A stretch of DNA of 64,000 bases from Ranitomeya imitator (taxonomy: Eukaryota). Positions 5,611 through 51,925 of this stretch are shown here, piece after piece (positions within the stretch are counted from its first letter, which is position 1; each line of letters opens with the position of its first letter). The DNA is taken from positions 271,002,001 through 271,066,000 of the forward strand of contig NC_091283.1 in NCBI RefSeq assembly GCF_032444005.1, written 5' to 3'. The position numbers and the translations under genes are program-made. The notes beneath the pieces are model-generated. The model was not told where the DNA came from. It saw only the letters and a program-made list of their open reading frames with translations, and did no database searches.

Positions 5611-5616
5611 AATAAA
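5611..5616 (+). promoter_or_regulatory. Candidate polyadenylation signal of the ADPRM-like gene (second AATAAA at 5714-5719)
   Basis: AATAAA ~300 nt after the stop codon; usage not testable from sequence. Confidence 0.4.
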
Positions 5617-5904
5617 TGATAACACGATACACGACCTGAAAAAGTCAGAGGAAGCGACAATCCTAACCATGACTGATAGGACTTTATGATGTCTGATTGA
5701 ATTACGTACGAACAATAAAAATTAACTACGCAACTAAAATACAGGAATTATTATCTCTTCATAAGATTGGACTCTAACAAACCTCAATAACTTAGATATA
5801 TATAGTCTGTCTGCCTGTCCCCCTCATCATTACATACATTGTACGCATAGCGGTTGTATCCTGTGAGTATCGTAAAAGACAATTAATTACTACTGCACCT
5901 ATCT

Positions 5905-14457: not shown

Positions 14458-14690
14458 CCAAATCTACACAAAGGAACAGCGCTCCACCGGGTGTATTGGT
14501 CCAAGAAAATCTTTATTCAGCCATATAGCATAAGCAACGTTTCAACCATATGCTGGTCTTTTTCAAGCATCTTTTTCATGCTTGAAAAAGACCAGCATAT
14601 GGTCGAAACGTTGCTTATGCTATATGGCTGAATAAAGATTTTCTTGGACCAATACACCCGGTGGAGCGCTGTTCCCTTGTGTAGATTTGG
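14458..14690. repeat. 233-bp near-perfect palindrome (113-bp arms, 7-nt loop)
   Basis: Arms CCAAATCTACAC...CAAGCAT / ATGCTTG...GTGTAGATTTGG differ at only 2 positions. Confidence 0.95.
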
Positions 14691-16190
14691 GCAATATACT
14701 ACGTGACTGGGCAAGATACTACGTGACTGGCCAATATACTCCGTGACTGGGCAATATACTACGTGACTGGGCAATATACTACGTGGCTCGGCAATATACT
14801 ACGTGACTGGGCAATATACCACGTGACTGGTCAATATACTACGTGACTGGGCAATATACTACGTGACTGGACAATATACTACGTGACTGGACAATATACT
14901 ACGTGGCTCTGTGCTGTATACTACATGACTGGGCAATATACTACGTGGCCGGGCAATATACTATGTGGCTCTGTGCTGTATACTACGTGACTGGGCAATA
15001 TACTACGTGACTGGGCAATATACTACGTGACTGGGCAATATACTACGTGACTGGGCAATATACTACGTGGCTGGGCAATATACTACGTGACTGGCCAATA
15101 TACTACGTGACTGGGCAATATACTACGTGACTGGGCAATATACTACGTGGCTGGGCAATATACTACGTGGCTGGGCAATATACTACGTGGCTGGGCAATA
15201 TACTACATGGTTGGGCAATATAATACGTGGCTGGGCAATATACTACGTGACTGGCCAATATACTACGTGACTGGGCAATATACTACGTGACTGGGCAATA
15301 TACTACGTGGCTGGGCAATATACTACGTGACTGGGCAATATACTACGTGACTGGGCAATATACTACGTGACTGGGCAAATTACTACGTGGCTGGGCAAAT
15401 TACTACGTGGCTGGGCAATATACTACGTGGCTGGGCAATATACTACGTGACTGGGCAATATACTACGTGACTGGGCAATATACTACGTGGCTGGGCAATA
15501 TACTACGTGACTGGGCAATATACTACGTGGCTGGGCAATATACTACGTGGCTGGGCAATATACTACGTGGCTGGGCAATTTACTACGTGGCTGGGCAATA
15601 TACTACGTGACTGGGCAATATACCACGTGGCTGGGCAATATACCACGTGGCTGGGCAATATACCACGTGGCTGGGCAATATACCACGTGGCTGGGCAATA
15701 TACCACGTGGCTGGGCAATATACTACGTGGCTGGGCAATATAATACGTGGCTGGGCAATATACTACGTGACTGGGCAATATACTACGTGACTGGGCAATA
15801 TAATACGTGGCTGGGCAATATAGTACGTGGCTGGGCAATATACTATGTGGCTGGGCAATATACTAAGTGACTGGGCAATATACTACGTGGCTCTGTGCTG
15901 TATACTACGTGGTTGGGCAATATGCTACGTGACTGGGCAATATACTACGTGGCTGGGCAATATACTACGTGGCTGGGCAATATACTACGTGACTGGGCAA
16001 TACACTACGTGGCTGGGCAATATACTACGTGGCTGGGCAATATACTACGTGACTGGGCAATTTACTACGTGGCTGGGCAATATACTACGTGGCTGGGCAA
16101 TATACTACGTGGCTGGGCAATATACCACGTGGCTGGGCAATATACCACGTGGCTGGGCAATATACTACGTGGCTGGGCAATATACTATGT
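14690..16190 (+). repeat. 20-bp satellite (GGGCAATATACTACGTG[A/G]CT)n, ~75 copies
   Basis: Tandem periodicity running up to the putative Helitron 3' hairpin. Confidence 0.95.
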
Positions 16191-16629
16191 GGACATGCAT
16201 ATTCTAGAATACCCGATGCGTTAGAATCGGGCCACCATCTACTATATATATATTATTGTATATATATTATATTACTTTTCTACTTGGCCGTCGTGGGCTG
16301 CCATTTTTGTTTGCTGGTTTATACGTTTCTGAGCACGGCACTTAGGCATTTACAGACAGCAAATGAGACAGCCACAGGCCAAAGGAGGTGATGTTCGTCC
16401 TTCATTTTCGAAGATGACCATGACTTCAGGGTTAGAAGAGAATTAGTAGTTATGGGTCCGGAGGTTTCTGATGAGTCCAATCCGAGCTCTGAAGGTTCGT
16501 CCACATACTTGACATAAGGAAGTAGATGTGATCAGTACCCCAGATTCTACTTGTGCCTTGCGGACAGCGCGTTGTTTTTGCAACAAAGATTTTCCTATCT
16601 TCTGTTGCACGTGCTCCTGAGGTGATCCT

Positions 16630-20523: not shown

Positions 20524-23500
20524 GCTGCATGTGTCGCGGCTGTGAGACAGGCATAGACAGCCTGTGTATTGGGCCCTCCATACATGTGTCGCGGCTGTGT
20601 GACAGGCATGGACAGCCTGTGTGTTGGGCTCTCCATACATGTGTCGCGGCTGTGTGACAGGCATGGACAGCCTGTGTGTTGGGCTCTCCATACATGTGTC
20701 GCGGCTGTGTGTCAGGCATGGACAGCCTGTGTGTTGGGCTTTCCATACATGTGTCGCGGCTGTGTGACAGGCATGGACAGCCTGTGGGTTGGGCTCTCCA
20801 TACATGTGTCGCGGCTGTGTGACAGGCATGGACAGCCTGTGTGTTGGGCTCTCCATACATGTGTCGCGGCTGTGTGTCAGGCATAGACAGCCTGTGTGTT
20901 GGGCTTTCCATACATGTGTCGCGGCTGTGTGACAGGCATGGACAGCCTGTGTGTTGGGCCCTCCATACATGTGTCACGGCTGTGTGACAGGCATGGACAG
21001 CCTGTGGGTTGGGCTCTCCATACATGTGTCGCGGCTGTGTGACAGGCATGGACAGCCTGTGTGTTGGGCTCTCCATACATGTGTCGCGGCTGTGTGACAG
21101 GCATGGACAGCCTGTGTATTGGGCTCTCCATACATGTGTCGCGGCTGTGTGTCAGGCATAGACAGCCTGTGTGTTGGGCTTTCCATACATGTGTCGCGGC
21201 TGTGTGACAGGCATGGACAGCCTGTGGGTTGGGCTCTCCATACATGTGTCGCGGCTGTGTGACAGGCATGGACAGCCTGTGTGTTGGGCCCTCCATACAT
21301 GTGTCGCGGCTGTGTGTCAGGCATAGACAGCCTGTGTTTTGGGCCCTCCATACATGTGTCGCGTCTGTGTGACAGGCATTGACAGCCTGTGTGTTGGGCT
21401 CTACATAGATGTGTCGCGGCTGTGTGTCAGGCATAGACAGCCTGTGTATTGGGCCCTCCATACATGTGTCGCGGCTGTGTGACAGGCATGGGCAGCCTGT
21501 GGGTTGGGCTCTCCATACATGTGTCGCGGCTGTGTGACAGGCATGGACAGCCTGTGTGTTGGGCTCTCCATACATGTGTTGCGGCTGTGTGACAGGCATA
21601 GACAGCCTGTGTGTTGGGCTCTCCATACATGTGTTTCATCTGTGTGACAGGCATAGACAGCCTGTGTGCTGGGCTCTCCATACATGTGTCGCGGCTGTGT
21701 GACAGGCATAGACAGCCTGTGTGTTGGGCTCTCCATACATGTGTCGCGGCTGTGTGTCAGGCATAGACAGCCTGTGTGTTGGGCTCTCCATACATGTGTC
21801 GCGGCTGTGTGACAGGCATGGACAGCCGGTGTGTTGGGCTCGCCATACATGTGTCGCGGCTGTGTGACAGGTATGGACAGCCTGTGTGTTGGGCCCTCCA
21901 TACATGTGTCGCGGCTGTGTGACAGGTATGGACAGCCTGTGTGTTGGGCTCTCCATACATGTGTCGCGGCTGTGTGACAGGTATGGACAGCCTGTGTGTT
22001 GGGGCATCCATACATATGTCGCGGCTGTGTGACAGGCATGGACAGCCTGTGGGTTGGGCTCTCCATACATGTGTCGCGGCTGTGTGACAGGCATGGACAG
22101 CCTGTGTGTTGGGCTCTCCATACATGTGTCGTGGCTGTGTGACAGGCATAGACAGCCTGTGTGTTGGGCTCTCCATACATGTGTCGCGGCTGTGTGACAG
22201 GCATGGACAGCCTGTGTGTTGGGCTCTCCATACATGTGTCGCGGCTGTGTGACAGGCATGGACAGCCTGTTTGTTGGCTCTCCATACATGTGTCGCGGCT
22301 GTGTGTCAGGCATAGACAGCCTGTGTGTTGGGCCCTCCATACATGTGTCGCGGCTGTGTGACAGGCATGGACAGCCTGTGTGTTGGGCTCTCCATACATG
22401 TGTCGCGGCTGTGTGACAGGCACTGACAGCCTGTGTGCTGGGCTCTCCATACATGTGTCGCGGCTGTGTGACAGGCATGGACAGCCTGTGTGTTGGCTCT
22501 CCATACATGTGTCGCGGCTGTGTGTCAGGCATAGACAGCCTGTGTGTTGGGCCCTCCATACATGTGTCGCGGCTGTGTGACAGGCATGGACAGCCTGTGG
22601 GTTGGGCTCTCCATACATGTGTCGCGGCTGTGTGACAGGCATGGACAGCCTGTGTGTTGGGCTCTCCATACATGTGTCGCGGCTGTGTGACAGGCATAGA
22701 CAGCCTGTGTGTTGGGCTCTCCATACATGTGTCGCGGCTGTGTGACAGGCATGGACAGCCTGTGTGTTGGGCTCTCCATACATGTGTCGCGGCTGTGTGA
22801 CAGGCATGGACAGCCGATGTGTTGGGCTCTCCATACATGTGTCGCGGCTGTGTGTCAGGCATAGACAGCCTGTGTGTTGGGCCCTCCACACATATGTCGC
22901 GGCTGTGTGACAGGCATGGACAGCCTGTGTGTTGGGCTCTCCATACATGTGTCGCGGCTGTGTGTCAGGCATACACAGCCTGTGTGTTGGGCTCTCCATA
23001 CATGTGTCGCGGCTGTGTGACAGGCATGGACAGCCGATGTGTTGGGCTCTCCATACATGTGTTGCGGCTGTGTGACAGGTATGGACAGCCTGTGTGTTGG
23101 GCCCTCCATACATGTGTCGCGGCTGTGTGACAGGTATGGACAGCCTGTGTGTTGGGCTCTCCATACATGTGTCGCGGCTGTGTGACAGGCATAGACAGCC
23201 TGTGTGTTGGGCTCTCCATACATGTGTCGCGGCTGTGTGACAGGCATGGACAGCCTGTGTGTTGGGCTCTCCATACATGTGTCGCGGCTGTGTGACAGGT
23301 ATGGACAGCCTGTGTGTTGGGGCATCCATACATGTGTCGCGGCTGTGTGACAGGCATGGACAGCCTGTGGGTTGGGCTCTCCATACGTGTCGCGGCTGTG
23401 TGACAGGCATGGACAGCCTGTGTGTTGGGCTCTCCATACATGTGTCGCGGCTGTGTGACAGGCATAGACAGCCTGTGTGTTGGGCTCTCCATACATGTGT

Positions 23501-25092
23501 CGCGGCTGTGTGACAGGCATGGACAGCCTGTGTGTTGGGCTCTCCATACATGTGTCGCGGCTGTGTGACAGGCATGGACAGCCTGTGTGTTGGGCTCTCC
23601 ATACATGTGTCGCGGCTGTGTGACAGGCATGGACAGCCTGTGTGTTGGGCTCTCCATACATGTGTCGCGGCTGTGTGACAGGTATGGACAGCCTGTGTGT
23701 TGGGGCATCCATACATGTGTCGCGGCTGTGTGACAGGCATGGACAGCCTGTGGGTTGGGCTCTCCATACGTGTCGCGGCTGTGTGACAGGCATGGACAGC
23801 CTGTGTGTTGGGCTCTCCATACATGTGTCGCGGCTGTGTGACAGGCATAGACAGCCTGTGTGTTGGGCTCTCCATACATGTGTCGCGGCTGTGTGACAGG
23901 CATGGACAGCCTGTGTGTTGGGCTCTCCATACATGTGTCGCGGCTGTGTGACAGGCATGGACAGCCTGTGTGTTGGCTCTCCATACATGTGTCGCGGCTG
24001 TGTGTCAGGCATAGACAGCCTGTGTGTTGGGCCCTCCATACATGTGTCGCGGCTGTGTGACAGGCATGGACAGCCTGTGTGTTGGGCTCTCCATACATGT
24101 GTCGCGGCTGTGTGACAGGCATTGACAGCCTGTGTGCTGGGCTCTCCATACATGTGTCGCGGCTGTGTTACAGGCATGGACAGCCTGTGTGTTGGCTCTC
24201 CATACATGTGTCGCGGCTGTGTGTCAGGCATAGACAGCCTGTGTGTTGGGCCCTCCATACATGTGTCGCGGCTGTGTGACAGGCATGGACAGCCTGTGGG
24301 TTGGGCTCTCCATACATGTGTCGCGGCTGTGTGACAGGCATGGACAGCCTGTGGGTTGGGCTCTCCATACATGTGTCGCGGCTGTGTGACAGGCATAGAC
24401 AGCCTGTGTGTTGGGCTCTCCATACATGTGTCGCGGCTGTGTGACAGGCATGGACAGCCTGTGTGTTGGGCTCTCCATACATGTGTCGCGGCTGTGTGAC
24501 AGGCATGGACAGCCTGTGTGTTGGCTCTCCATACATGTGTCGCGGCTGTGTGTCAGGCATAGACAGCCTGTGTGTTGGGCCCTCCACACATATGTCGCGG
24601 CTGTGTGACAGGCATGGACAGCCTGTGTGTTGGGCTCTCCATACATGTGTCGCGGCTGTGTGACAGGCATGGACAGCCTGTGTGTTGGCTCTCCATACAT
24701 GTGTCGCGGCTGTGTGTCAGGCATAGACAGCCTGTGTGTTGGGCTCTCCATACATGTGTCGCGGCTGTGTGACAGGCATGGACAGCCTGTGTGCTGGGCT
24801 CTCCATACATGTGTCGCGGCTGTGTGACAGGCATGGACAGCCTGTGTGTTGGGCTCTCCATACATGTGTTGCGGCTGTGTGACAGGCATAGACAGCCTGT
24901 GTGTTGGGCTCTCCATACATGTGTTTCATCTGTGTGACAGGCATAGACAGCCTGTGTGCTGGGCTCTCCATACATGTGTCGCGGCTGTGTGACAGGCATA
25001 GACAGCCTGTGTGTTGGGCTCTCCATACATGTGTCGCGGCTGTGTGACAGGCATGGACAGCCTGTGTGTTGGGCTCTCCATACATGTGTCGT
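20524..25092 (+). repeat. 55-bp satellite, ~83 highly homogeneous copies (CATACATGTGTCGCGGCTGTGTGACAGGCATGGACAGCCTGTGTGTTGGGCTCTC)
   Basis: 55-bp period with occasional 54-bp variants; produces the many overlapping MESPTHRLS ORFs. Confidence 0.97.
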
Positions 25093-25113
25093 GCCTGTCA
25101 CACATGCAGCTGT

Positions 25114-30225: not shown

Positions 30226-32088
30226 CTACAGGCGACCACCACCTACTGGCCATGCAGTGACATGAGGTCCACTGTTCTTCAGCATCATCCACGCCCCACC
30301 ATGTGAATCCAACCAGAGTCTGAAGATGGCGTGAAGTGGTTTGGTGAAGGTGGCGTGGAAGGAGAACAGGTGTCGGATGGGGTCACTCAGCTCGTAGAAG
30401 GACAGGTGACCTGCCTCATAGTCCAGGTACACCCCGAAGCGCTGGCAGGTAAACTTATCCGGCAGCTTGACCTCCTTGCAGGCATGCATCACCGAGTACT
30501 GGTTGTTCCATTTGCACAAGCCCCACGATTTGGTGTTGCACCCAATGTAGGAGCGGAAGCCTTTCCTGGCGATACTGGGATACGACATTCCCAGTCTCCA
30601 GTTTCCCCACTTACTTGTTTCCACCATCCAGAAATGTCGTCCCGTGGAGAAGCTAGAGCTGCTTAACACTTGGTGGTCCTTGAACCTCTGTGGGGTCTTT
30701 GGTTTTGGTTCATGTGTTTCTACCCAATAAAAGGATTTCAAATCTGGGAGGACCCGAATATTATTCCCAGCCGTGTCCTCATCCAGAAAAATGTCCGACT
30801 CTTCATTCATGAAAAGACCATTATGGGCAATGGTGACCAACTCAGCAAAACCAGCATGCAGAATCTCCGAGACCGGAGGTTGATCCAGATCGTGAGCAGC
30901 TCTAGAATAGTCCTGTTGGTCGTTACCACCATCAATGTTTTTTTGTTTCAGTCCCTTGAGGCCTGGGATTGGAATGGATGTGATACGCAGCTCCTCGATG
31001 GTGGGCATCTGCTTGGATAACTCAACGTTCTTCACTAACAGGTCTTTGAGGACTGAAATAGGATCAGATTTGGTACTCAGCTCCTCAATGGTGGTCATCT
31101 TCTTGGGCAACTCTTCCTTCTTAATTTCTAATTCATTGAGGACTGTGATAGGATCCGATGTGGTACTTAGTTCCTCAATGGTGGTCATCTTCTTGGGCAA
31201 CTCTTCCTTCTTAATTTCTAATCCATTGAGGACTGTGATAGGATCAGATGTGGTACACAGCTCTTTGATAATGGTCATCTTTTTGGACAACTCATCCTTC
31301 TTTGCTTCCAGTTCTTTGATCTCCTTCTGACATGGTGCTGAAGCTTTCTCCGCCTGCCTGGAGATCTCACTCAGGACTTTCTTCTCTAAAACTTCCATGT
31401 GTTTCCTCATGTCCTTAAAGACCACATTAACCTTCTTGTTAAGTCCCTCAGCTTCCAGTTCAAGCAGTTGACCATGTTTCTTCAGATCTTGGATTCTGTC
31501 TTCAGCTTCAGATCTTGATGACAACAGTTTCTCCAAGATATTGTTCAGCTCATGCTTCATGGGAGTCTCATCGACTGACTCCACCAGGTGTTCCCTTTGT
31601 TCGGCCATGCAATAAAGGCAGAGATAAGCGGCATCTTCTGCACAGGAACTTTCCAGCATCTTCTTATGGATGGAGCATCTTCTGACGTCCATATTAGGGG
31701 TTGGGTTGGACACGACGTGTTCTGCAGACTTGGTGTGGACTTTCAGATGGTCGTGACCTAGAGAAGCTTCACACAGCAGGCAGGATTTGATGTCAGGTAC
31801 CGGAGAGTGAATACAATAAGTGCAGATGGTGACAGGCACCTCCTCACCAGGCCTGGCAGACGGGGAGCAAAGGATGACATCACCCAAGGTCTGGTCCCTT
31901 CTCGGTGAGGAATTGGGTTGCGTCTTGCAGTCAGGACACTTATAGACTGCAGCCGCCCCATGCATCTCCAGCAGACGAGCAATGCACCCCTGGCAGAAGC
32001 TGTGCCCACATCTCAGCGATGAAACTTCCTTACAAATGTCCTGGCACAGCGAGCAGATCAGCTCGTCCCTCAGATTGTCAGTCGCCAT
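30226..32088 (-). CDS. TRIM-B: TRIM25/finTRIM-like protein, 620 aa, with four tandem 30-aa modules and partly degenerate B-boxes
   Basis: ATG at 32088 after acceptor cttctag|; intact RING CSLC...CGHSFCQGC...CPDC; PRY-SPRY with YLDYEAGHLSFY; 90-bp repeats at 30952-31311. Confidence 0.88.
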   Translation of the reverse strand: MATDNLRDELICSLCQDICKEVSSLRCGHSFCQGCIARLLEMHGAAAVYKCPDCKTQPNSSPRRDQTLGDVILCSPSARPGEEVPVTICTYCIHSPVPDIKSCLLCEASLGHDHLKVHTKSAEHVVSNPTPNMDVRRCSIHKKMLESSCAEDAAYLCLYCMAEQREHLVESVDETPMKHELNNILEKLLSSRSEAEDRIQDLKKHGQLLELEAEGLNKKVNVVFKDMRKHMEVLEKKVLSEISRQAEKASAPCQKEIKELEAKKDELSKKMTIIKELCTTSDPITVLNGLEIKKEELPKKMTTIEELSTTSDPITVLNELEIKKEELPKKMTTIEELSTKSDPISVLKDLLVKNVELSKQMPTIEELRITSIPIPGLKGLKQKNIDGGNDQQDYSRAAHDLDQPPVSEILHAGFAELVTIAHNGLFMNEESDIFLDEDTAGNNIRVLPDLKSFYWVETHEPKPKTPQRFKDHQVLSSSSFSTGRHFWMVETSKWGNWRLGMSYPSIARKGFRSYIGCNTKSWGLCKWNNQYSVMHACKEVKLPDKFTCQRFGVYLDYEAGHLSFYELSDPIRHLFSFHATFTKPLHAIFRLWLDSHGGAWMMLKNSGPHVTAWPVGGGRL

Positions 32089-32688
32089 CACCGATCACAG
32101 GAGGCTAGAAGAAGGTGTAGTGACAGGTGGTGGAGGTGTCCTCAGGTTTACACCCCTGGCAATAGTCTATGGTGTTTAGTTCGCAGCTGAGGCAGGGAAG
32201 ATTTGCAGATCTCATGCAGGGAGGTTCTACAGCCACATCACCATCACGTGGTCCAGGAGCTGCTGTAATAGCAGAACTGGAGACAGGAAGGGATGAGGGA
32301 AGCCATTATTGTGTGGTGACGCATGAGACCACACAGCATCTGTCCATTAACTCCATCCTGCCCGCTCCGAGCAGAAATTAAAGGGGCCTGAACAATTTTT
32401 TTTTAAATGTTAAAAAAAAAACCTGAAGAAGTCACCCTGACCTAACGGATCCTGGGACCCTCGGGTTTTGGCACATCTCAGGTCCCCTGCCGCTCTTTAT
32501 ATTTCTCACTCCTCAGATTTCATCCTGATTCGTACATCTATAAACTGAAAATTATTTTTTCTCCTCTTGTAGCTGGAGTACCCGTTAACGAAATACTATA
32601 TGGTCACTAAATTGCATCTGTCAAGAGTGTAAACCTGTGGACTCCTCCACCACCCATCACTACACCTTCTGCAGACCTTCTGTGGTCA

Positions 32689-34350
32689 ATGGTGGCGTGT
32701 GACAATCTGAGGGATGAGCTGACCTCCTCTCTCTGTCGGGACATTTGTATGGAAGCTTCATCCCTGAGATGTGGGAACAGCTTCTGCCAGAGTTTACAAG
32801 TGTCCTAACTGCAAGACGCCATCAAATTCGTCTCTGAGAAGGGACCAGACACTGGGCGATGACATCTATTGCGTCTCATCTGCCCAACCTGGTCAGGAGG
32901 CACCTGTCACCGTCTACCCTTACTGTATCCAGTCTACGGTAGCCGACATCAAATCCTGCCTGCCGTGTGAAGTCTTAAGAACACGTCGTTTCCAACCCCA
33001 CCCTTAACATGGACGTCAGAAGATGCTCCATCCATAAGAAGATGCTGGACAGTTAATGAGCAGAAGATGCCGCTTATGTCTGTCTTTATTGCATGGCCAA
33101 ACACAGGGAACACCTGGTGGAATCGCTTGATGAGACTCCCATGAAGAAGAAGGAGAAGTTGAACGATGTCTTGAAGGAACTGTGATTATCAAGATCAGAA
33201 GCTGGAGACAGAATCCAAGATCTGAAGAAACAAAGTCAACTGCTTCAACTGGAGGCCAAGTGTCTTTCGAAAGAAGGTCAATGTGGTCTTTCAGTACATG
33301 GAAATTTTAGAGAAGAAAGTTCTGAGTGAAATCTTCAAGCTTCAGCACCATGTCAAGAGGAGATCCATGAAGTGGAAGTGAAGAAGGATGAGTTGTTTAA
33401 AAAATCACCATCATTGAAGAGCTGTGCATCATATCTGATTCTATCATGGTTCTCAATGGACTGGAAATTAAGGAGTGAGTTGTCCATGAAGATGACCACC
33501 ATCGAAAAGCTGTGTAAGAAATCTGATCCTACCTCAGTCATCAAGCTCCTGGAAGAGAAGTTGTATTAAAAAAATTACCATCATTGAAGAGCTGTGTATC
33601 ATATCTGATTCTGTCATGGTACTTTATGGACTGGAAGTGATGGAGTATGAGTTGTCCATGAAGATGACCACCATTGAAGAACTGTGCATCACATCTGATT
33701 CTATCATGGTCATCGATGGACTGGAAATGAAGGAGTATGAATTGTCCAGGAAGATGACCACCATCGAAGATCTGTGTATCAAACCTGATCCTACCACAGT
33801 TCTTGAAGGACTGGAAGCAAAGAAGAAAGAGTTGACCAAAAAGATGGCCATAACTGAACAGCTGTGTAAGAAATCTGATCCTACCTCAGTCCTCAAGTTC
33901 TTGGAAGTGAAGAAGGATGAGTTTTCCAAGAAGATGACCACTATTGAGAAGATTTGTACTACATCTGATAAAATCACAGCCCTCAATGGACTGAAACCAA
34001 AAGAGATTAATGGTGATAACCACCAACAGGACTATTCTAGAGCTCCTCACAATCCAGATAAAGCTCTGGTCTTGGATTCTGCACACTGGTTTTGCTGAGC
34101 TGGTCACCATTGCCCATAATGGTCTCTTTATGAAGACTCGGACATCTTTCTGGACGATGACACGGCTGGGAATAATATCTCCCAGATGTTAAGTCCTTTT
34201 ATTGGATAGCAGTACATGAACCAAATCGAAAGACCCCCAAAGAGGTTCAAGGTCCACCAGGTGTTAAGCAGCTCCAGCTTCTCCATGGGACGATATTTCT
34301 GGATGGAGGAAACATGTAAATGGGAAGACTGGCAACTGGGAATCCCAGTA
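32689..34350 (+). pseudogene. Inverted TRIM pseudogene, closest paralogue of TRIM-B
   Basis: ATG GTG GCG TGT GAC AAT CTG AGG GAT GAG CTG (MVACDNLRDEL) parallels MATDNLRDEL; RING substitutions, deletions, frameshifts and stops; seven 90-bp modules at 33372-33990; SPRY truncated after WQLG. Confidence 0.9.
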
Positions 34351-35150: not shown

Positions 35151-37234
35151 ATTAACATTTGCTTTTTATTTATTTATTTATTTTATTTTTTTAACCCCTT
35201 AGTGACAGAGCCAATTTGGTACTTAATGACCGAGCCAATTTTTGCAATTCTGACCACTGTCAATTTATGAGGTTATAACTCTGGAACGCTTCAACGGATC
35301 CCGCTGATTCTGAGATTGTTTTTTTTCGTCACATATTGTACTTCATGTTAGTGGTAACATTTCTTCGATATTACTTGCGATTATTTATGAAAAAAAAAAC
35401 GGAAATATGGCAAAAAAAATTTAAATTTTGCAATTTTCAAACTTTGTATTTTTATGCCCTTAAATCAGAGCGATATGTCACAAAAAATAGTTAATAAATA
35501 ACATTTCCCACATGTCTACTTTACATCAGCACAATTTTGGAAACAAAAATTTTTTTGTTAGGGAGTTATAAGGGTTAAAAGTTGACCAGCAATTTCTCAT
35601 TTTTACAACACCATTTATTTTTAGGGACCACATCACATTTGAAGTCATTTTGAGGGGTCTATATGATAGAAAATAACGAAGTGTGACACCATTCTAAAAA
35701 ATACACCCCTCAAGGTTCTCAAAACCACATTCAAGAAGTTTATTAACCCTTTACGTGCTTTACAGGAACTGAAACAATGTGGAAGGAAAAAATGAACATT
35801 TAACTTTTTTTTGCAAACATTTTAATTCAGAACCATTTTTTTTATTTTCACAAGTGTAAAAACAGAAATGTAACCATAAATTTTGTTATGCAATTTCTCC
35901 TGAATACGCCAATACCCCATATGTGGGGGTAAACCACTGTTTGGGCGCACCGCAGAACTTGGAAGTGAAGGAGCGCCTTTTGACTTTTTCAATACAGAAT
36001 TGGCTGGAATTGAGATCGGACGCCATGTCACGTTTAGAGAGCCCCTGATGTGCCTAAACAGTGGAAACCCCCCACAAGTGACACCATTTTGTAAACTAGA
36101 CCCCTTAAGGAACTTATCTAGATGTGTGGTGAGCAATTTAAACCCCCAAGAGCTTCACAGAAGTTTATAACGCAGAGCCGTGAAAATAAAAAATCGCATT
36201 TGTTTACACAAAAATGATCTTTTCGCCCACAAATTCTTATTTTCACAAGGGTAACAGGAGAAATTAGACCACAAAAGTTGTAGTGCAATTTCTCCTGAAT
36301 ACATCGATACCCAATATGTGGGGGTAAACCACTGTTTGGGCGCACCGCAGAGCTTGGCAGAGGAGGAGTGCCGTTTTACTTTTTCAATGTAGAATTGTCT
36401 GGAATTGAGATCGGACGCCATGTCGCGTTTGGAGAGCCCCTGATGTGCCTAAACAGTGGAAACCCCCCACAAGTGACCCCAATTTGGAAACTAGACCCCC
36501 CATGGAACTTATCTAGATGTGTGGTGAGAACTTTGAATGCCCAAGTGCTTCACAGAAGAATGCAGAGTCGTGAAAATAAAAAAATATTTTTTTTCCACAA
36601 AAAAGATATTGTAGCCCCCAAGTTTTTATTTTCACAAGGGTAACAGGAGAAATTGGACCGCAATAGTTGTTGTCCAATTTATCCCGAGTACACTGATGTT
36701 CCATATGTGGGGGTAAACCACTGTTTGGGCGCACGGCAGAGCTCGGAAGGGAAGGAGCGCCATTTTGGAATGCAGACTTTGATAGAATGGTCTGTGGGCG
36801 TTATGTTGCGATTGCAGAGCCCCTGATGTACCTAAACAGTAGTAACCCCCCACAAGTGACACCATTTTGGAAACTAAACCCCCCAAGGAACTTATCTAGA
36901 TGTGTGGTGAGAACTTTGAATGCCCAAGTGCTTCACAGAAGTTTAGAATGCAGAGTCGTGAAAATAAAAAAATATTTTTTTTCCACAAAAAAGATTTTGT
37001 ACTCCCAAGTTTTTATTTTCACAAAGGTAACAGGAGAAATTGGACCCCAAAAGTTGTTGTCCAATTTATCCCGAGTACGTTGATGCCCCATATGTGGGGG
37101 TAACCCACTGTTTGGGCGCACGGCAGAGCTCAGAAGGGAGGGAGCACCATTTGACTTTTTGAGCGCAAAATTGGCTGTCGTGTTTGGAGACCCCCTGATG
37201 TACCTAAACAGTGGAAACCCCCCAATTCTAGCTC

Positions 37235-38140
37235 CAACCCTAACCCCAACACACCCCTAACCCTAATCCCAAACCGATCCATAATCCTAATCACTAACCC
37301 TAACGATAATCACAACCCTTACCCCAAAACAACCCTAATGTCAACCCTAACCATAACCCTAATCAAAACCCTAAATCCAACACACCCCTAATCCTAATCT
37401 CAACCCTATCCTCAAACCTAACCCTAATCCCAATACACCCCTAATCACAACCCTAACCTTAACCCTAATCCCAAACCTAACCCTAATCCCAAGCGTAACC
37501 CTAATGCCAACCCTAACCCTAATACCAACCCTAATCCAAACCCTAACCCTAATCCCAACTCTAACCCTAACTTTAGCCCCAACCCTAGCCCTAAGGCTAC
37601 TTTCACACTTGCGTCGTTTGGCATCCGTCGCAATCCATCGTTTTGGACAAAAAACGGATCCTGCAAATGTGCCCGCAGGATGCGTTTTTTGCCCATAGAC
37701 TTGTATTGCCGACGGATCATGACGGATGGCCACACGTCGCGTCCGTCGTGCACTGGATCAGTTGTGTTTTGGCGGACCGTCGGCACAAAAAACGTTCAAT
37801 GTAACGTTTTTTTGTACGTCGCGTCCGCCATTTCTGACGGCGCATGCGTGGCCGTAACTCCGCCCCCTCCTCCCCAGGACATAGATTGGGCAGCAGATGC
37901 GTTGAAAAACTACATCCGCTGCCCACGTTGTGCACAATTTTCACAACGTGCGTCGGTATGCCGGGCCGACGCATTGCGACGGCCCCGTACTGACGTAAGT
38001 GTGAAAGAAGCCTAACCCTAAATTTAGCCCCAACCCTAAATTTAGCCCCAACCCTAACCCTAAATTTAGCCCTAAACCTAGGCCTAACCCTAGCCCTAAT
38101 CCAAGCCCTAACCCTAGCCCTAACCCTAATTTTAGCCCCA
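37235..38140. repeat. Degenerate telomere-like (AACCCT)n array inside the piggyBac element, split by a MITE
   Basis: CCCTAA/CCCTAG/CCCAAA hexamers at 37235-37594 and 38013-38140. Confidence 0.85.
37595..38012. mobile_element. PIF/Harbinger-type MITE (418 bp)
   Basis: TIRs GGCTACTTTCACACT / AGTGTGAAAGAAGCC; TAA target duplication on both sides. Confidence 0.88.
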
Positions 38141-39914: not shown

Positions 39915-42900
39915 CTAAGGCACCTGGAAGGAGAAACCCCTCCAGAGATGGGCCGCCCTCCGGGCACCCAGTCTTTCGCACTCCAGAGAACGCACCTTCA
40001 CCAGGGCACCTAGGATGCTGCTACAAACTTCATCTACATGGAGGATTTTACTCTGCGTCGAAACTAAAACTCGTGCGTTCCACGTGAAATACCTGACCAC
40101 TGCGCTGACTAAGAATAAAGTGGCTCGGTCCCTTCTCCCGAGGTCTCTGAACGCTCCATAGGCCCACTCGGCATAGGACAGAGTGGCCAGCCGTGGCCAA
40201 CCAATGGAAGCGCCCACCCTGTTGTACACCTCTGTATTAAAGGGACAATGAAGCAGGAAGTGCTCCATGCTTTCCAGCATGGTAGTGCAAGCCTCACGGG
40301 GACAATTCCTGTCCACGGAGCTCCTGTGCTTCAAATTGTCCCTCACATACAACTTATCTTGGAAGCAGCGCCAAGTCAAGTCCCAATATTTCTTGGGGAT
40401 CCTGCTAGAATTTAACAAACTCAACCCAACCTCTAGATCCCGACTCGGGCAGTCCTTGAGGACCAATAATCTCTGAAAATGCGAAAGCAAGACCCGCATG
40501 TCGAGGAGTTTCCTCGGGAGGGACCTCACTTCCCACATTCCCAGACCCCACCGGCGCATCATTTTCAGAACCGGGGTAACATAAGCCGGGAGATGCCCGT
40601 GCGGTGTGCGAAGATCCTTCAATCTTCCCCCTGTCTCCCATTCCTGGAAGAAAGGCTGAAACCATCCTTTGCAGGAGAATACCCACGGAGGAGCCCTCTC
40701 TTTCCAGAGGTTTGCCACGTTAACTTTCATAAAGGTGTTCACTAGAAACACCACGGGGTTCACCATATTCAACCCCCCTAGTCTCCTCGTGCGATAAGTG
40801 ACCTCCCGTTTGACTAGGTTTAGTCTATTCCCCCATAACATCTGGAAGAACAGACTGTAGACCCGTGTCCAGAGAGGCTCCGGCAAGACACAGACGCTGC
40901 CCAGGTAGATTAGCAAGGGGAGCAGGAAAGCTTTGCACAGGTCAACCCTTTCCCTCAGGGTCAAAGACCAACCCTTCCATTGGTCCACTCTTTGGGCGAC
41001 ACCTTTGATTCTGCCTTCCCAGTTTTTTGTGGGGTAATCTCCCTGGCCAAATTCGATGTCTAGGACTTTGGCATGTTGTTGGGGTTCGGGGAGGGTGTCC
41101 GGAAGATCAAACGTGGGATCCCCGCCTCCCAGCCAGAGACTCTCACGCTTGTCCTGGTTGACCTTGGACCCGGATACCTCCGAGTAGCTCTCCACTTCTG
41201 ACATCACCACCATCGCCTCCTCTTGCGAAGAAACAAAGACTGTAACGTCGTCTGCGTAGGCCACTACCCTCAGGATAGCCTCTGGCGCCAACCCGTCCAT
41301 CCTCACCCCCGCCAACGGTCCACAATCAACCCTTCTGAGGAAGGGATCGATCACAAATGCGTAAAGCAAAGGGCTAAGAGGGCAGCCCTGGCGGACACCA
41401 GATCCCACCCCGAAAGGTTGTCCAATCCACCCGTTTACCAGAGGGAAAGTCTCAGCCCCTGCGTATAAGGTCTTAAGCCAGTCCACAAACCCTCCAGGCA
41501 GACCATACCTCAAAAGAGTGGACCAGAGGTACTCGTGGTCGACCCGATCAAAGGCTTTTGCCTGATCCAGGGTCAGCAAGAACCCCTTCCAAAGGCCTGC
41601 CCTGCCCCGCTCCATGGCCTCTCGGACACCCAGAACAGCACTGAAAGTGCTACGGCCAGGAACGAAACAGTGCTGGGCCTCCGAAAGGAGCCGTGGCGCA
41701 AACTTCACCAGCCTGTTGAAGAGTATCTTAGCCAAAACTTTCCTGTCCACATTGAGAAGTGATATGGGACGCCAATTCTCAATGCGTGACGGATCCTTAC
41801 CCTTTGACAAAATGATCAAAGCCGACCTCCTTAATGATCTCGGCAGAGTGCCGGAGGAGAAACACTCATTAAACACCTGAGTCAAGAGGGGGACCAAGGA
41901 GTCCATAAAGGTCTTAAAGAACTCGGATGTTAAGCCATCCGGACCTGGCGATTTTTTTGGGCCGGAGCCCATCGATCGCCAGTCTCACTTCCTCTTCTTT
42001 GATCGCTTCTGTCAAACCACCCAGCGAGAGGTCAGCCCCTGGCTCTGGAACAGCTTCAGCCAGGAAAGCCGACATCCTGTCACGATCCAGTTCCTTCCTT
42101 CCCAAGAGGTGCGAGTAGTATGAACTGACGACCTCCAAGATCCCTGATCTGGACCTTCTCAGGGATCCCGTACTGTCCATCAGCCCTGTCACTATCTTAC
42201 TATTCACTGACATCTTGCAGCTTCTGTAAGGGTTGGGTGAGTAGTACTTCCCGTAGTCCCTCTCAAAAACCAAAGATGCGTGCCTATCGTACTGACACCT
42301 CTTTAGCAAGGATTTCACACTGGAGATCGCCTCGCGGCTACCCCCAGTCGAGACAAGATGCTCGAGTTTCCTCCTCAGGCTCTGATACAGGCGATCCCTG
42401 TTCAGGCTTCTGAGGTTCGAGAGTTGCCGGAAGAATCTCGCCACCCGATGTTTGAACATCTCCCACCACTCAGACTTAGTGTTACTTAGGCCCAGCAGCG
42501 GTACCTGGCTCTGAAGAAATTCCTCAAAGGACCGTCTTACAGCTTCTTCCTCAAGGAGTGACGAATTCAGCTTCCAATAACCTCTTCCCATCCGAAGAGT
42601 CTCTGTAACGCTCAGAGAAAACATAATCAAACAGTGATCGGAGAATTCCACTTCCACAACCGACAACGGCGAGGAGACGGCCTGCTCCTTCAAATAAAAC
42701 CTGTCTATCCTAGACCTGCACTGACTACCTCTAAAAAAGGTGAACCCCGCGTGGCCTGTGTTGTGCCGGATGTAGACATCCACCAGGCGTGCCTCACTTA
42801 CTATCCTATTTAGCGTGACGCAATCGTAAGCCAGCCGGTCTCCGGAACCTCCTCTATCACAGGGTCTCGTGACGTTATTGAAATCCCCTCCAAAGACCAC

Positions 42901-43319
42901 CTGCCGGCTCGAAAATAAGAAAGGTTTGATCTTCATGAAGAGACACTTGCGGTCCCACTTGGACTGGGGACCGTAAATGTTAATGAGCCGAAGCTCCTGA
43001 CCCCCATGGAGACATCTAGGATCAAGCATCTCCCCATTTCTAACTCGATCAATCGTCTGCATTCAACCGCTGCGGTCTTAAAAAGGACCGCCACCCCGCT
43101 ATACGGCTCGGCTGCAAGAGACCAGTAGGAGGGCCCGTGCCTCCACTCCCGCCTTGCCTTATGCATGGTTGATAGGTCGGTCAACCTAATCTCCTGCAAA
43201 AACAAAATGTCGGCGTCAAGTTGGCCGAGAAAATGAAAGGCCATGTACCTTGCCGCTTCTGACTTTATGCTGGCAACATTAATGGTTGCCAGCGTCAACG
43301 GGGTGGGTGCCACCATCAT
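39915..43319 (-). pseudogene. Tx1 ORF2 (APE endonuclease + reverse transcriptase), ~1134 aa if two homopolymer indels are corrected
   Basis: TINVASI, ILFLQE, GGDFN, FSDH, WRPISLLNVDRK, LDQAKAFDRV, GVRQGCPLSP, YADD; frameshifts at ~43001-43005 and ~41952-41958. Confidence 0.9.
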
Positions 43320-46300
43320 GATTGATTGAATTAGATAGCGTTTTTCTTCCCACCCCCAACAGTTTCACCCTCTTCCTCTGACAATGATGAGTTTTTAGTG
43401 CACTTAAGACAAACAGACTCATCCATTCTCTCCTTACATACACTCTGGCCCTTGTCTGGTGGTCCTGAGGTAGTCCCCCCCAGAAGGCTTTGTATTTGCC
43501 CCCTGAGAAGAAGACCCAGCGACCTCCTGAGCCCCAACAACCTTGTCCGCAACCTCTGGCCCCGGGTCCCCATCGCCCCCCTCTGGAGGGGAGTCCTGGA
43601 GGGCCCGGATCGCACTCCAAGGAGGAGGCTCGAGGCCCGGACCCCCTCTTATCCTTAGTTGTTTTCCTGTTACTCTTTTTCTTTTGCTGTGACCACTCGG
43701 CCTCTCCCTCATCCAGACTGTCACCGGATGAAGGTTCCTGGGCAGACATGGCGTCCTTTTGCTCCTCCCTTTCAAGTCTCTTGACTTCCTCGCTCAATTC
43801 GCTGTCTTTAGGATCCTCAGCTGCAAGTGAAGCACCCGGGTCAGAGTTTAGGGTCATTACTCCCTGCCCCCTGTTCCCATGGCGCTGCTCCTGCCGCCTG
43901 ATATTGGATGGCGGCAGCCTGCTCCTCACCGGTTTCCTGCCTCCTCCGCCTCTGCTGGTCCCTTCACCGGCGAGATTGGTCCCGGCTTTCGCCTGTCCCA
44001 CACTCGCCGCTTTCAGGACCGCATTGGCAAAGGAACGTGGACAGCGACTGAACGGGTGACCGAGGTCACCACACAAGTTACACCTAATCCTGCCACAGGT
44101 AGCAGCGAGATGGCCGAGGTCCCCACACAGTGCGCATTTCTGGGTGGTACACTGCGCACTGAAGTGTGTGGGGCTGCCGCACCAGTGAGACCTTAGGCTG
44201 CCCCCGGTAGAAAATCAAGATCCTGTCCCTCCCCAAAAATGTTGAGGAAGGGATATGGGTAACGGTGTTTCCTGAACCCTTCAATTTCACCATGAAGGTC
44301 CAGGCTCCTGACCAGATACCATGCTCATCGAGGGTCTTCTCGGGAATACCGACGATGTCGCCGTATCGCCCAACCCAGGTGGAGATGTCGACACAGGAAA
44401 GTGACTCGTTACTGGTCAAAACGGTCACCTTCCTGACTGAGTTCTGGCGGGATATTGCTACAGCGAGGAAACCCCGCCATTCGGGGCGACCCCAAGCCAG
44501 CTCGTGGCGAGACCAGAAAAGCTCAAGGCCCTCCGGTCTCACGAAGCTGACATCGAAGTAGGAGGTCCCATAGGGATGGATCAAGGCAAAGATGTCATAT
44601 GCCGCGAAGCCCATCCCCAGCAGGAGCTCAGCAACCTTTGACCGATCAGGACAGGCATCCTTGCTTACCCACTGGAGACGGGCCACATTCCTACGGTTAC
44701 TCCTCTGCCCCGTTGTCGGCAGAGACCAGTCTCTGCCCCGCTATCTCGCAAGGCGGAAAGACCGTGTCGCTCTATCCAGAAAGACAGATCAACCTCCCTC
44801 CCCTCTACATTGATGGAACTCTCCCCTCTCCTCAGGGCGTCCAGGAAGCGCTGTTGCAAGTCACCATCCTCAGGGTCACCAGACAAGGGCGCACTACTAC
44901 CCCCAGCAGTGACAGCTCCTGAATAGCTTGGGGCTGAAGCCCCTGCCACCGCTGGGGGGGGCAGCGGGACCACTACCTGCTTCCCCTCCACCAACACCAG
45001 TAATGCTCTCCTCATTCACTCCACCACTACTCCCATCATTTGCAACATCACTACTCCCATCATTCACTCCACCACTACTGTCACCATTCGCTCCACCACT
45101 ACTCCCACCATTCACTCCACCACTACTCCCACCATTCACTCCACCACTACTCCCATCATTCACTCCACCACTACTACCATCATTCACTCCACCACTACTC
45201 CCACCATTCACTCCACCACTACTCCCACCATTCACTCCACTACTACTCCCATCATTCCCCTTACCATTGCCACCACTTCCCGTCACTTTATTACCAGTAT
45301 TGGCACCACCATTTTTCCCAGTGTTCTCTGCACCTTCCACAGTAACATCCATTCCTTCCTCACTTGTGCCTGGCTTCTCTGCACTCACACCTGCTGGACC
45401 GGGGGAGGGGTGCAGCACCACACCCGGTTTCCCTTGATTGGTGCTCTGTTGTGTCTCTGGAGCTCCTTGCCCCCCCACTGCAGCAGTTTGCATTTTATTA
45501 TTCTGGGCTCGCTGCTTGTTGGGGGGCGCCGCCTGCCCCGCACCCACAGACTTCGGGGTCCTGGTGTCACGTTTGGGCGCTGGAGCACTCTGTCCCCCCG
45601 TCGCAGCAGGGCGCCCAGTGTTCCCTGCAGTTGATTTTTCCTGCTTTTTTTTGTCCTTTTTGGACTCGCTGCTCTCCTGTCGCAGCCGCATGCCTCTTCT
45701 CTGCTGAGGCGCACTGCGCCGCTGTCACAACAGTGCGCCCCCCTTTCGCCGCACCAAGTTTCTCGGACCTGCTCCCCACAGGGCCGGCTCAGCCGTAGTG
45801 AGCAGGGATGGAGTCTGCCCACACCATCCCCCTTTCGCTAACGGCGTGGACATCCCCCTTGCCCCCCTCAGCCCCGGTGAGAACCGGCTTAGCCGCAGAG
45901 GGCAGTGAGGGAAACTTCTCGGGGTCCCCTATGTCCGGCTCCGTGAGTACCACCACAACCTTGCCCCCTGCACTGTTCCCCGCACAGACGGCAGCACCGC
46001 CGGACGTCCTCCTCCTCTCCCCACCTTGCCTATGCCCCGGACCCACTGCAGAGCCCATGCCTTTAGGTTTGGTGGGGTTTACACAGGAGGCGGTATGTGT
46101 AACATCATCCATCAGTACATATCTGTAACTCACCACCTCCCGTGCAGTCTCCTTCCTTGTCTTCTTCCTCTTCTTGGATTCCTCTGCTGGCTCGTCCTCA
46201 CCAAAGGAAAAGCGGTCCAGGTTCACTGGAGACTCCAGCTGTCGGATCTCCTCTAGCAGACCGCCCTCCTCCTCTTCCTCCGCTGACACTCCAGCCTGTG

Positions 46301-50838: not shown

Positions 50839-51925
50839 CTTGGCCTGAAACCAAAACTGCTCTACAGCACAATGTGCTTCCTGCCCTAGGAATGTGAGGT
50901 GGGGAGGAGACTCCCTCACCCTTTATTGGCCAGGCTGTGCATGCTGACCCTTTTTTTTTTTTTTTTTTAAAGGTGATGTTTCAGAGCTTATTGTTACTGC
51001 ACCTTAAAGGGATCCCAGAGCTTGGGAGGGTTTCTTCCAGAAAACATCCCCTATTGCTCTGGAACTGATAGAATTAAAAAAAAAACAACAACCTGTAAAC
51101 CCAGCAGATCAGGTTTCTCCATAATCAGTTGCTGGCCTCACTGGGAAGTGGTTTTAACTCTTTCCTTTCCAAATTGTGCTGCATTATTGCATTTATGCTT
51201 TTTTTTTGTGCTTATTTTTATATACCTTTTTTTTTCTTAATTTGAGCATTTTTTATGTCAATTTTATTTGTTTTTTTTTTTTGGTCCTTGAGTCCGATTC
51301 ATTAATTGCAACTTTTTTTTTTTAAAAAAAGGCAACATTTTTCTGGAGGGTTAACGCAATTTTTTGCGACATATTAACGAATTTGCGCTAAAAATTTGAC
51401 AACACGGGAAGATAGAAATAAATAGTATTTTTATTGGCGACATTTTGCCAAAAGACAAAAAATATAAAGAGACGATTCATGATTTTTTTTAGTCAATTTT
51501 CTGTTTTTTTTATCTGGCACTCAGACTTTTTTTGCGCCAAATTATTCTAGACGGCGCTGGATTTAATTAAAACTAAAAATTGTTCCTTGTTTTTGTTGTA
51601 AATCTTTTTTGCAGCTTTTTAGATCTTTTTGAAGAGTTTTAGGTGCAGAACTGCTCAAAAAAATCCTGAAAAAATGCTTGGAAAATCTTCATTTATATGA
51701 GAAATCCGCTTTGCTGTTCTTCATCATTTTCTAGAATTTTTTAGTACTAGAGGGACTAAAAAAGTCTAAATTAGATAATAAATGATGGTCAAAATCTAAA
51801 GTAAAGAAAAGATTAACACAAAGTAGAAAAGGCATGGAGGATGTAATCTTCAGAGGAAGACATTCCTCAGAAAGGAAAAATGTAGAAGCAATGAAGAAAT
51901 CCCTACAAAAAGGAGGTCATACTAA

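Follow-up and report, generated by a model that had tools for sequence, protein, structure and literature searches.

In TRIM5alpha and TRIM20, a helix of ~105 residues leads through a short hairpin loop into short returning L2 helices, and the C-terminal L2 helix packs against the centre and sets where the B30.2 domains lie (PMC5667893, PMC4455283). In TRIM5alpha, this C-terminal helix docks the SPRY domain at the coiled-coil centre, and a 'molecular ruler' model has been described, the spacing of the tethered SPRY domains being important for avid capsid binding (PMC5667893). The finTRIMs of teleosts diversify by gene duplication together with positive selection in the B30.2 loops (PMC2657112). 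A partial literature search returned no title or abstract on tandem amplification within the TRIM coiled coil or L2. Here we analysed a 64-kb window of the Ranitomeya imitator genome, which contains four intact TRIM genes (TRIM-A to TRIM-D) and one pseudogene, and focused on TRIM-B. This protein has the architecture of TRIM5alpha and TRIM20, whose L2 varies by substitutions without repeated modules at the end of the long helix H1; the SPRY loops of TRIM5alpha evolve fast, whereas the SPRY domain of TRIM-B is strongly conserved. Human TRIM25 (4CFG, 6FLN) likewise shows the order RING, B-box, long H1, hairpin, L2 and PRY-SPRY, but carries the H1-end segment in one copy, while TRIM-B carries four copies and has two B-box zinc ligands substituted. 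The cluster resembles the finTRIMs, being composed of related RBCC-B30.2 genes in tandem with a pseudogene, yet in TRIM-B the module copy number varies inside the gene and the B30.2 domain is conserved. TRIM25 is the best full-length PDB sequence match, and the best fold matches are the TRIM25 coiled-coil-PRYSPRY structure 6FLN and TRIM72. 'TRIM25-like' is nevertheless a best-hit name, and orthology to vertebrate TRIM25 appears to be disfavoured, since TRIM-B is intronless and lies in a lineage-specific cluster.

The TRIM-B coding sequence occupies 30226..32088 of the minus strand, on which all TRIM-B features given below lie, as one exon; counted from the ATG, it has 620 codons followed by a stop codon. 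The single, uninterrupted open reading frame (30226..32091, 621 codons) includes the whole array. The window is free of N and is packed with minisatellites, and the exact TRIM-B product is recorded in assembly GCA_032444005.1. The gene models derive from genome annotation; no RNA-derived contig was found for the TRIM-B products, whose exact sequences matched only on genome assemblies. Assembly artefact was considered as the source of the array and rejected, because the array is present in four independent assemblies. From sequence, TRIM-B is an intact, constrained, protein-coding gene of the intronless, class-IV, TRIM25-like type. A simple motif look at the flanks, weighed as uninformative, found one TATA-like hexamer upstream and no AATAAA or ATTAAA in the 630 bp that follow the stop codon.

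Pfam recognizes RING, B-box, TRIM_CC, PRY and SPRY domains in TRIM-B. The RING finger (31927..32055, residues 12-54) matches zf-C3HC4, as expected for a class-IV TRIM, with E=2.8e-6 and 27.5 bits (cut-off 21); all eight zinc ligands are there, and 8/8 ligand columns are intact in four orthologues. Alignments place a B-box1-like zinc region at 31717..31824 (residues 89-124), where residue 111 is Gly in TRIM-B and Cys in 81/81 paralogues compared. B-box2 (31588..31677, residues 138-167) scores 21.4 bits with zf-B_box, below the curated cut-off of 24.1, and has Gln at residue 164, where 99% of the compared paralogues have His. A different B-box zinc ligand is gone in each orthologue. The B-box fold is recognizable, but zinc binding at one site per box is doubtful. 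The long coiled-coil helix H1 follows (31252..31563, residues 176-279), assigned by DSSP in two AlphaFold2 models at pLDDT 79-96 and by TRIM_CC (40.3 bits, cut-off 30). This 104-residue helix is succeeded by a break and then by the return helix of residues 403-426, the C-terminal L2 helix (30811..30882), which runs into PRY in both models. The PRY-SPRY or B30.2 domain (30289..30789, residues ~434-600) is supported by SPRY at E=1.5e-11 (44.9 bits, cut-off 26.3) and PRY at E=6.6e-5 (22.9 bits, under the cut-off of 27.5). Its model reaches pLDDT 88-97 across residues 431-600 and superposes on the PRY-SPRY structures of TRIM25, TRIM7 and TRIM21 with Foldseek TM-scores of 0.8-0.9. By analogy with class-IV TRIMs, an antiparallel dimer and E3 ubiquitin/ISG15 ligase activity would be expected.

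The array spans 30952-31311 and comprises 360 bp, that is, four in-frame 90-bp units of 30 residues each, covering residues 260-379 from the ATG (261-380 of the 621-codon frame). Tandem Repeats Finder (TRF) detects a period-90 repeat at 30956-31302 (3.9 copies, 82% matches, 0 indels, score 414), and DNA identity between units is 70-91%. Translation of the units reproduces exactly the four 30-residue peptides quoted in the original prediction, and the ~90 residues that it said had been added are borne out as 90 residues relative to the single-unit paralogues. Unit 1 (31222..31311, residues 260-289) contains the H1 end, a break at Asp-Pro and then a short helix; it is the canonical copy and the orthologue of the one unit that other TRIMs have. 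Unit 2 (31132..31221, residues 290-319) arose most recently, by duplication of the middle unit, which is unit 3 (31042..31131, residues 320-349). Unit 4 (30952..31041, residues 350-379) closes the array; it has diverged the most and contains a Pro in mid-helix. The module signature Leu1, Leu8, Leu18, Pro24 and Leu28 is kept in 32/32 aligned units, and Asp23 in most.

We placed the module structurally by alignment, AlphaFold2 and published helix boundaries (PMC4455283). Unit 1 corresponds to positions ~69-98 of the 142-position TRIM_CC model and, by phmmer, to residues ~281-311 of human TRIM25, which form the end of H1 and the turn. The AlphaFold2 runs covered monomers of the whole protein (85 sequences) and of residues 170-432 (67 sequences); in both models H1 stops at residue 279 (unit 1, position 20) and is followed by a 3-residue break and a short helix of residues 283-289. 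The final 20 residues of H1 are therefore the helical portion of unit 1. The agreement of the three lines of evidence upholds the earlier assignment of the module to the H1 end, turn and short helix. When the repeat region was searched alone (Pfam, E<=1), the units re-matched TRIM_CC positions ~65-113 in three matches. Other weak hits of that search, such as PliI and spectrin-like families (E<=1), were dismissed as chance, TRIM_CC alone being credible. Units 2-4 reach a pLDDT of only 31-76 and their helices are inconsistent between the two models, so we claim no fold for them; because just four sequences cover those columns, any fold of the extra units would be a guess.

Orthologues of TRIM-B carry four units in Dendrobates, three in Phyllobates, three in Anomaloglossus and one in the hylid Dendropsophus, whose protein has the same SPRY domain including the characteristic C-terminal tail. 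The reading frame of 589-620 codons is intact in four species at a whole-gene dS of <=0.35. As demonstrated by the identity matrix and the unit tree, the units are positional orthologues between species. Specifically, unit 4 has its orthologue in the last unit of each of the four species (79-90% identity, clade support 87/92, inner forks starred), and unit 3 in unit 2 of Phyllobates and Anomaloglossus (80-92% identity, clade support 82/72). Unit 2 is shared with Dendrobates tinctorius only; its identity is 91% with unit 3 and 93% with unit 2 of D. tinctorius, and the two unit 2 copies form a clade (support 80/95). Given this positional orthology and the counts of 4, 3, 3 and 1, three units are ancestral to Dendrobatoidea, predating the Dendrobatidae/Aromobatidae split, and one unit was gained later. 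The middle unit was duplicated on the way to Ranitomeya and Dendrobates, which is the one copy-number change seen in the four dendrobatoids. Across lineages at dS up to 0.5, the core of three units has kept both frame and register, with 0 units lost and concerted evolution absent.

TRIM-A (8322-9992), TRIM-C (49270-50919) and TRIM-D (57068-58651) each contain a single counterpart of the unit, and these intact paralogues are 33-34% identical to TRIM-B by tblastn and 38-41% in the multiple alignment. The statement that the module is single in the neighbours thus stands for these three genes and fails for a pseudogene that had gone unmentioned. This head-to-head paralogue of TRIM-B (32689..34343, plus strand) was recognized by tblastn, three-frame translation and inverted-repeat arms. 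Its tblastn pieces fall in three frames at 50-74% identity, and the arms are 73-92% complementary; it bears frameshifts, in-frame stops and deletions in RING and B-box1, and its SPRY domain ends at ~residue 510. A 600-bp spacer (32089..32688) lies between the divergent genes, its inner ~70-100 bp on each side belonging to the inverted duplication, and the repeat pair 31990-32161 / 32619-32790 is 83% complementary. The pseudogene holds an array of seven units (33372..33990, plus strand), as shown by TRF (period 90, 4.1 copies; period 270, 2.3 copies), seven nhmmer hits and the inverted repeat. TRIM-B units 1-4 are collinear with the final four; the initial three derive from duplication of a ~270-bp segment of three units and are interrupted by small indels. 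In the unit tree and identity matrix, the pseudogene units form a polytomy with unit 1, which gives no placement relative to the TRIM-B units. The partner pseudogene is decayed in 4/4 species, with unit counts of 0, ~3, 4 and 7. Going only by the unit counts, which in Anomaloglossus are 3 and ~3, the amplification may have preceded the inverted duplication.

Selection was estimated by the Nei-Gojobori method in four species (six species pairs). PRY-SPRY is the most conserved part of TRIM-B, with dN/dS of 0.07-0.12 in 6/6 pairs and 81% identity to a Leptodactylus protein; these regional values, averaged over the domain, gave no sign of diversifying selection of the TRIM5alpha type in SPRY. The whole gene shows 0.27-0.35, RING plus B-boxes 0.38-0.58, and the repeats 0.24-0.55, which is 3-5 times the PRY-SPRY value. 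Within the repeats, dN is significantly below dS in the Phyllobates-Anomaloglossus pair (Fisher test, p=2.5e-5), while the closest pair, Ranitomeya-Dendrobates, is not significantly below 1 (p=0.15). The three older units have been kept under purifying selection.

Other in-frame tandem amplifications at the H1 end and hairpin, among them a three-unit Pseudophryne protein, were seen at the protein level in TRIM25-like proteins of Pseudophryne corroboree (XP_063786711, XP_063791186, XP_063791170), Mixophyes fleayi (XP_075062167, XP_075062174) and Leptobrachium leishanense (A0A8C5PZB2, A0A8C5PWM7), and more amplifications lie at the L2/PRY junction. The units measure 24 and 87 residues in the myobatrachids, 10 and 26 in Leptobrachium, and 30 in the dendrobatoids. 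Since unit lengths, boundaries, genes and families differ, these are taken as independent events. Among these arrays, it is the dendrobatoid one that is shown here to have great age and positional stability.

The array is an in-frame tandem amplification of the H1-end/hairpin module, old and constrained, and we consider probable (roughly 0.6) the account in which it adds elements at the tips of the rod without displacing the SPRY domains. Its mutational origin would be unequal exchange or replication slippage, in a repeat-prone gene family and genome. The fourth unit was supplied by duplication of the middle one, and the gene was also duplicated head-to-head, with decay of the second copy. The extra units would most likely be amphipathic helix-plus-turn elements between the antiparallel-rod tip and the L2 return path, giving mass or slack at both rod tips beside the B-boxes of the partner chain. 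The SPRY domains would stay put, because the C-terminal L2 helix that docks them at the rod centre is retained downstream of the array in orthologues and paralogues. The B-box ligand losses would fit a remodelled rod tip, which is speculative. The array may instead be a tolerated passenger, a harmless slippage product without new function at a hinge and L2 that accept nearly any in-frame length, the modest constraint reflecting a need to stay soluble and helical. The independent frog amplifications, with units of 10, 24, 26 and 87 residues at the same hinge and more at the L2/PRY junction, agree with this idea, as do the minisatellite-packed window, the low AlphaFold2 confidence of units 2-4 and the raised dN/dS of the repeats relative to SPRY; the decaying pseudogene gained units as well, so expansion needs no selection. 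We nevertheless regard it as rather unlikely, given a three-unit core that kept frame and register without loss or concerted evolution, module core positions retained in each extra unit, and dN significantly below dS in the deep pair. If the extra units are inert, they would provide a case of minisatellite-type slippage within a conserved gene.

The original prediction went further and proposed an adaptive copy number that alters SPRY spacing or oligomer geometry and thereby diversifies ligand or capsid recognition, separately from the SPRY loops. Species do differ in copy number (3 versus 4), other frog TRIMs repeatedly show similar amplifications, and SPRY spacing counts for avid capsid binding in TRIM5alpha (PMC5667893). 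However, there has been a single copy-number change among the four dendrobatoid species, and the units have been stable for longer than Aromobatidae and Dendrobatidae have been separate. The strong conservation of SPRY, including its identity to the Leptodactylus protein, points to a ligand that has been conserved and not to an arms race, and virus-related evidence of any kind was not found. Diversified recognition therefore finds no support in the PRY-SPRY dN/dS, nor altered SPRY spacing in view of the retained docking helix, nor does AlphaFold2 fold the extra units with confidence, and we judge this proposal improbable. It is scarcely credible that TRIM-B itself is non-functional or unexpressed and decaying, with an array devoid of meaning at the protein level. 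The B-box ligand losses in every orthologue, the B-box and PRY scores below Pfam cut-offs and the lack of a nearby poly(A)-signal hexamer would be in line with decay, but the frame is intact in four species at dS up to 0.35, dN/dS is ~0.3 overall and ~0.08 in SPRY, and the adjoining true pseudogene displays what local decay looks like. The TRIM-B array is real and conserved, a variation on a known architecture, and nothing yet shows an effect on target recognition.

Repeated amplification at the hinge in several frog families suggests either a spot unusually tolerant of length change or a length change that is useful, and TRIM structural biology would learn from either answer. A tentative and unlikely extension is that the hinge of frog TRIMs is a recurrent, selectable 'length dial', tuning the rod tips (RING/B-box reach, higher-order assembly) or the SPRY tether; frog TRIMs would then diversify in a way separate from SPRY-loop substitution. 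The natural series of 1, 3 and 4 modules on a near-identical SPRY domain offers a ready-made test of TRIM geometry.

Tandem Repeats Finder detects a 90-bp period in the window at 30956-31302 (3.9 copies, 82% matches, no indels, score 414), which is enclosed by a single uninterrupted reading frame at 30226..32091 (-), that of TRIM-B; the ATG at 32088 gives 620 codons. Translation of the minus strand at 31222-31311, 31132-31221, 31042-31131 and 30952-31041 (units 1 to 4, from the N- to the C-terminus) yields exactly the four in-frame 30-residue peptides of the original prediction, and the pairwise DNA identity among these units is 70-91%. The domain order by Pfam is RING, B-box (below the cut-off), TRIM_CC, PRY (below the cut-off) and SPRY, and human TRIM25 is the top whole-length PDB sequence match. 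The AlphaFold2 model of TRIM-B (pLDDT 70, pTM 0.40) is closest in fold to the TRIM25 coiled-coil-PRYSPRY crystal structure and to full-length TRIM72, and its predicted PRY-SPRY superposes on the solved TRIM25, TRIM7 and TRIM21 domains with TM-scores of 0.8-0.9. TRIM-B, whose product is recorded in assembly GCA_032444005.1 of the poison frog Ranitomeya imitator, is a class-IV TRIM. The other three intact TRIM genes of the window, TRIM-A (8322-9992), TRIM-C (49270-50919) and TRIM-D (57068-58651), all on the minus strand, carry one unit each. Additionally, TRIM-D (-), despite an uninterrupted reading frame and a good SPRY score, has a Tyr in place of the first RING cysteine.

The structural identity of the unit was derived from several sources. 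TRIM_CC positions 3-97 of 142 match TRIM-B residues 194-288 counted from the ATG (195-289 of the 621-codon ORF translation), which places unit 1 at about model positions 69-98. When the repeat region is scanned alone, the TRIM_CC segment ~65-113 is matched three times, with no other credible Pfam match for this region. Unit 1 is aligned by phmmer to TRIM25 residues ~281-311. Both AlphaFold2 runs show one helix over residues 176-279 (pLDDT 79-96), followed by a three-residue break at Thr-Ser-Asp preceding the invariant Pro, and then a short helix at residues 283-289. In the solved TRIM scaffolds, a helix of ~105 residues is followed by a short hairpin loop and short L2 helices going back, of which the final one packs at the dimer centre and carries the B30.2 domain (PMC4455283, PMC5076470, PMC5667893). 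The Pfam, TRIM25 and AlphaFold2 mappings together with these scaffolds therefore support the assignment of the unit, as originally proposed, to the end of the long helix plus the turn and short helix. TRIM-B is a class-IV TRIM of known architecture with an amplified hinge, which is the new variant.

The module had been described as single in the neighbours of TRIM-B, which is right for the three intact paralogues and wrong for the nearest neighbour. The latter, a head-to-head TRIM-B copy at 32689-34343 (+), was recovered by tblastn as pieces in all three frames with 50-74% identity. On three-frame translation, this copy proves to be a pseudogene: its frame is interrupted by frameshifts and by in-frame stop codons, the RING and B-box1 have suffered deletions, and the SPRY is truncated near residue 510. 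It contains a second 90-bp array at 33372-33990 (+), as found by Tandem Repeats Finder, in which a nucleotide profile of the unit identifies seven units; the final four correspond in order to TRIM-B units 1-4, and the initial three derive from a 270-bp (three-unit) duplication. The arms of the inverted duplication lie at about 30587-32161 and 32619-34343, with 73-92% complementarity. In each of the three other species, the orthologue has broken remnants of the partner upstream, at ~9135-9381 of the Dendrobates locus (L001), ~8376-9458 of the Phyllobates locus (L002) and ~5452-7115 of the Anomaloglossus locus (L003). These partners hold 4 units in Phyllobates, ~2.6 in Anomaloglossus and 0 in Dendrobates, where most of the partner has been deleted.

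Close orthologues were located in these three species by word-index search: Dendrobates tinctorius (89% identity to TRIM-B, 4 units), Phyllobates terribilis (83%, 3 units) and Anomaloglossus baeobatrachus of the Aromobatidae (75%, 3 units). Cross-species identity is 86-94% for the first units, 80-92% for the middle units and 79-90% for the last units; the extra unit is 93% identical between Ranitomeya and Dendrobates, and that of Ranitomeya is 91% identical to the adjoining middle unit. The maximum-likelihood unit tree contains a last-unit clade (support 87/92, inner forks starred), a middle-unit clade (82/72) and a clade of unit 2 from Ranitomeya and Dendrobates (80/95). Judged by their sequences, the units are positional orthologues. 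The identity matrix and the tree together indicate that three units are older than the Dendrobatidae/Aromobatidae split, that one unit was gained in the Ranitomeya+Dendrobates lineage, and that no concerted evolution of the units occurred. Further out, a Dendropsophus (Hylidae) protein (P0037) has one unit, the same SPRY and the same characteristic C-terminal tail, its C-terminal ~350 residues being 59% identical to TRIM-B, and the SPRY of a Leptodactylus protein shows 81% identity. The PRY-SPRY of TRIM-B (30289-30789, -) and the unusual tail are conserved across Hyloidea (P0035, P0037), which is unusual for a gene within a fast-evolving TRIM cluster; such conservation hints at a conserved ligand.

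Next to these comparisons, the four orthologues were codon-aligned and dN/dS was calculated by the Nei-Gojobori method. The values are 0.27-0.35 for the whole gene, 0.07-0.12 for the PRY-SPRY, 0.24-0.55 for the repeats, 0.25-0.40 for the linker, 0.21-0.87 for H1 (the coiled-coil helix), and 0.38-0.58 for the RING plus B-boxes. For the repeats, the excess of dS over dN reaches significance in Phyllobates-Anomaloglossus, the phylogenetically independent deep pair (Fisher p=2.5e-5), and does not in Ranitomeya-Dendrobates, the close pair (p=0.15). Across 32 aligned units, of which the four orthologues contribute 14 and other frog TRIMs 18 single ones, Pro24 never varies, and conservation is 90% or more at Leu1, Leu8, Leu18, Asp23 and Leu28, extra units included. 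The conserved positions and dN/dS indicate that the extra units behave as constrained coding sequence. All eight RING ligands are kept. At least one B-box zinc ligand is lost in each of the four orthologues (31588-31824, -; P0002-P0004), namely C111G and H164Q in Ranitomeya, C111R in Dendrobates, H114D, H164N and H167Q in Phyllobates, and H118Q in Anomaloglossus, while these ligands are conserved in 99-100% of 81 paralogues. This pattern suggests that the B-boxes are no longer constrained in the TRIM-B orthologue group.

Our data show that the in-frame amplification of the H1-end/hairpin module is real and old, and that the module has been retained in a constrained gene with a highly conserved SPRY. 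The array probably arose through unequal exchange or through slippage, and its extra units are each probably an amphipathic helix with an Asp-Pro-capped turn; units 2-4 have pLDDT 31-76 in the AlphaFold2 monomer models. The extra units lie upstream of a retained C-terminal L2 helix (residues 403-426), by which, in TRIM5alpha, the SPRY is docked at the centre of the rod (PMC5667893). Because of this retention and docking role, the extra 60-90 residues would more likely make an excursion at either end of the rod, close to the B-boxes of the partner chain, than alter the SPRY spacing. The eroded B-box ligands are compatible with such a remodelled rod tip, as a correlation only. Length-based diversification of recognition, which had been put forward for the array, is unsupported and, on three counts, unlikely: a single copy-number change separates the four dendrobatoid species, the SPRY is under strong purifying selection, and the pseudogene array grew without any selection.

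A word search with only the repeat region as query yielded no proteins besides the four orthologues at E<=1e-3. When the 30-column unit alignment was run as a profile, exhaustively, against 1.84 billion representatives, 159 proteins passed E<=1e-3; tandem units were sought in them by a script for adjacent matches and then by inspection. The 30-residue array is restricted to the dendrobatoid orthologues among these proteins, and independent in-frame amplifications are found at the same end-of-H1/hairpin hinge of other frog TRIMs. In Pseudophryne corroboree (P0122, P0075, P0087, P0139), the repeated unit is 24 residues long and occurs 2, 3 or 6-7 times, depending on the protein; Mixophyes fleayi (P0137, P0048) has a 24-residue unit twice and an 87-residue unit twice; Leptobrachium leishanense (P0135, P0132) has a 26-residue unit twice and, inside H1, a 10-residue unit about 11 times. 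More in-frame amplifications occur at the L2/PRY junction in Leptobrachium (P0073, P0049, P0085, P0105, P0079) and Pseudophryne (P0080, P0052, P0087). These junction proteins show a 10-residue unit at the first PRY strand in 3 to ~12 copies, or a duplicated ~25-residue L2-helix/PRY-start segment. The amplifications at both sites indicate that the hinge-to-PRY stretch is repeat-prone or length-tolerant in the family of TRIM-B. By title or abstract, and within partial literature coverage, no publication on tandem amplification within a TRIM coiled coil or L2 was found. The TRIM-B array is one case of a tendency that recurs in frog TRIM genes and is apparently undescribed.

Beside the TRIM cluster, ORFs at 3690-4379 (+) and 4698-5315 (+) resemble metallophosphoesterase exons, with Pfam Metallophos on the first. 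A LINE-type retrotransposon at 39915-44686 (-) comprises a reverse-transcriptase ORF, matched by Pfam RVT_1 and zf-RVT, with further ORFs upstream of it, and degenerate telomere-like (CCCTAA)n tracts lie within the chromosome arm at 37234-37594 and 38011-38129. Much of the intergenic space of the window is occupied by large minisatellite arrays (20528-25098, 14688-16192, 1-1622, 5904-6687, 63677-64000 and 55028-56501), whose units include 55-bp x83, 20-bp x75, 30-bp x49 and 35-bp in both orientations, and which yield long spurious ORFs.
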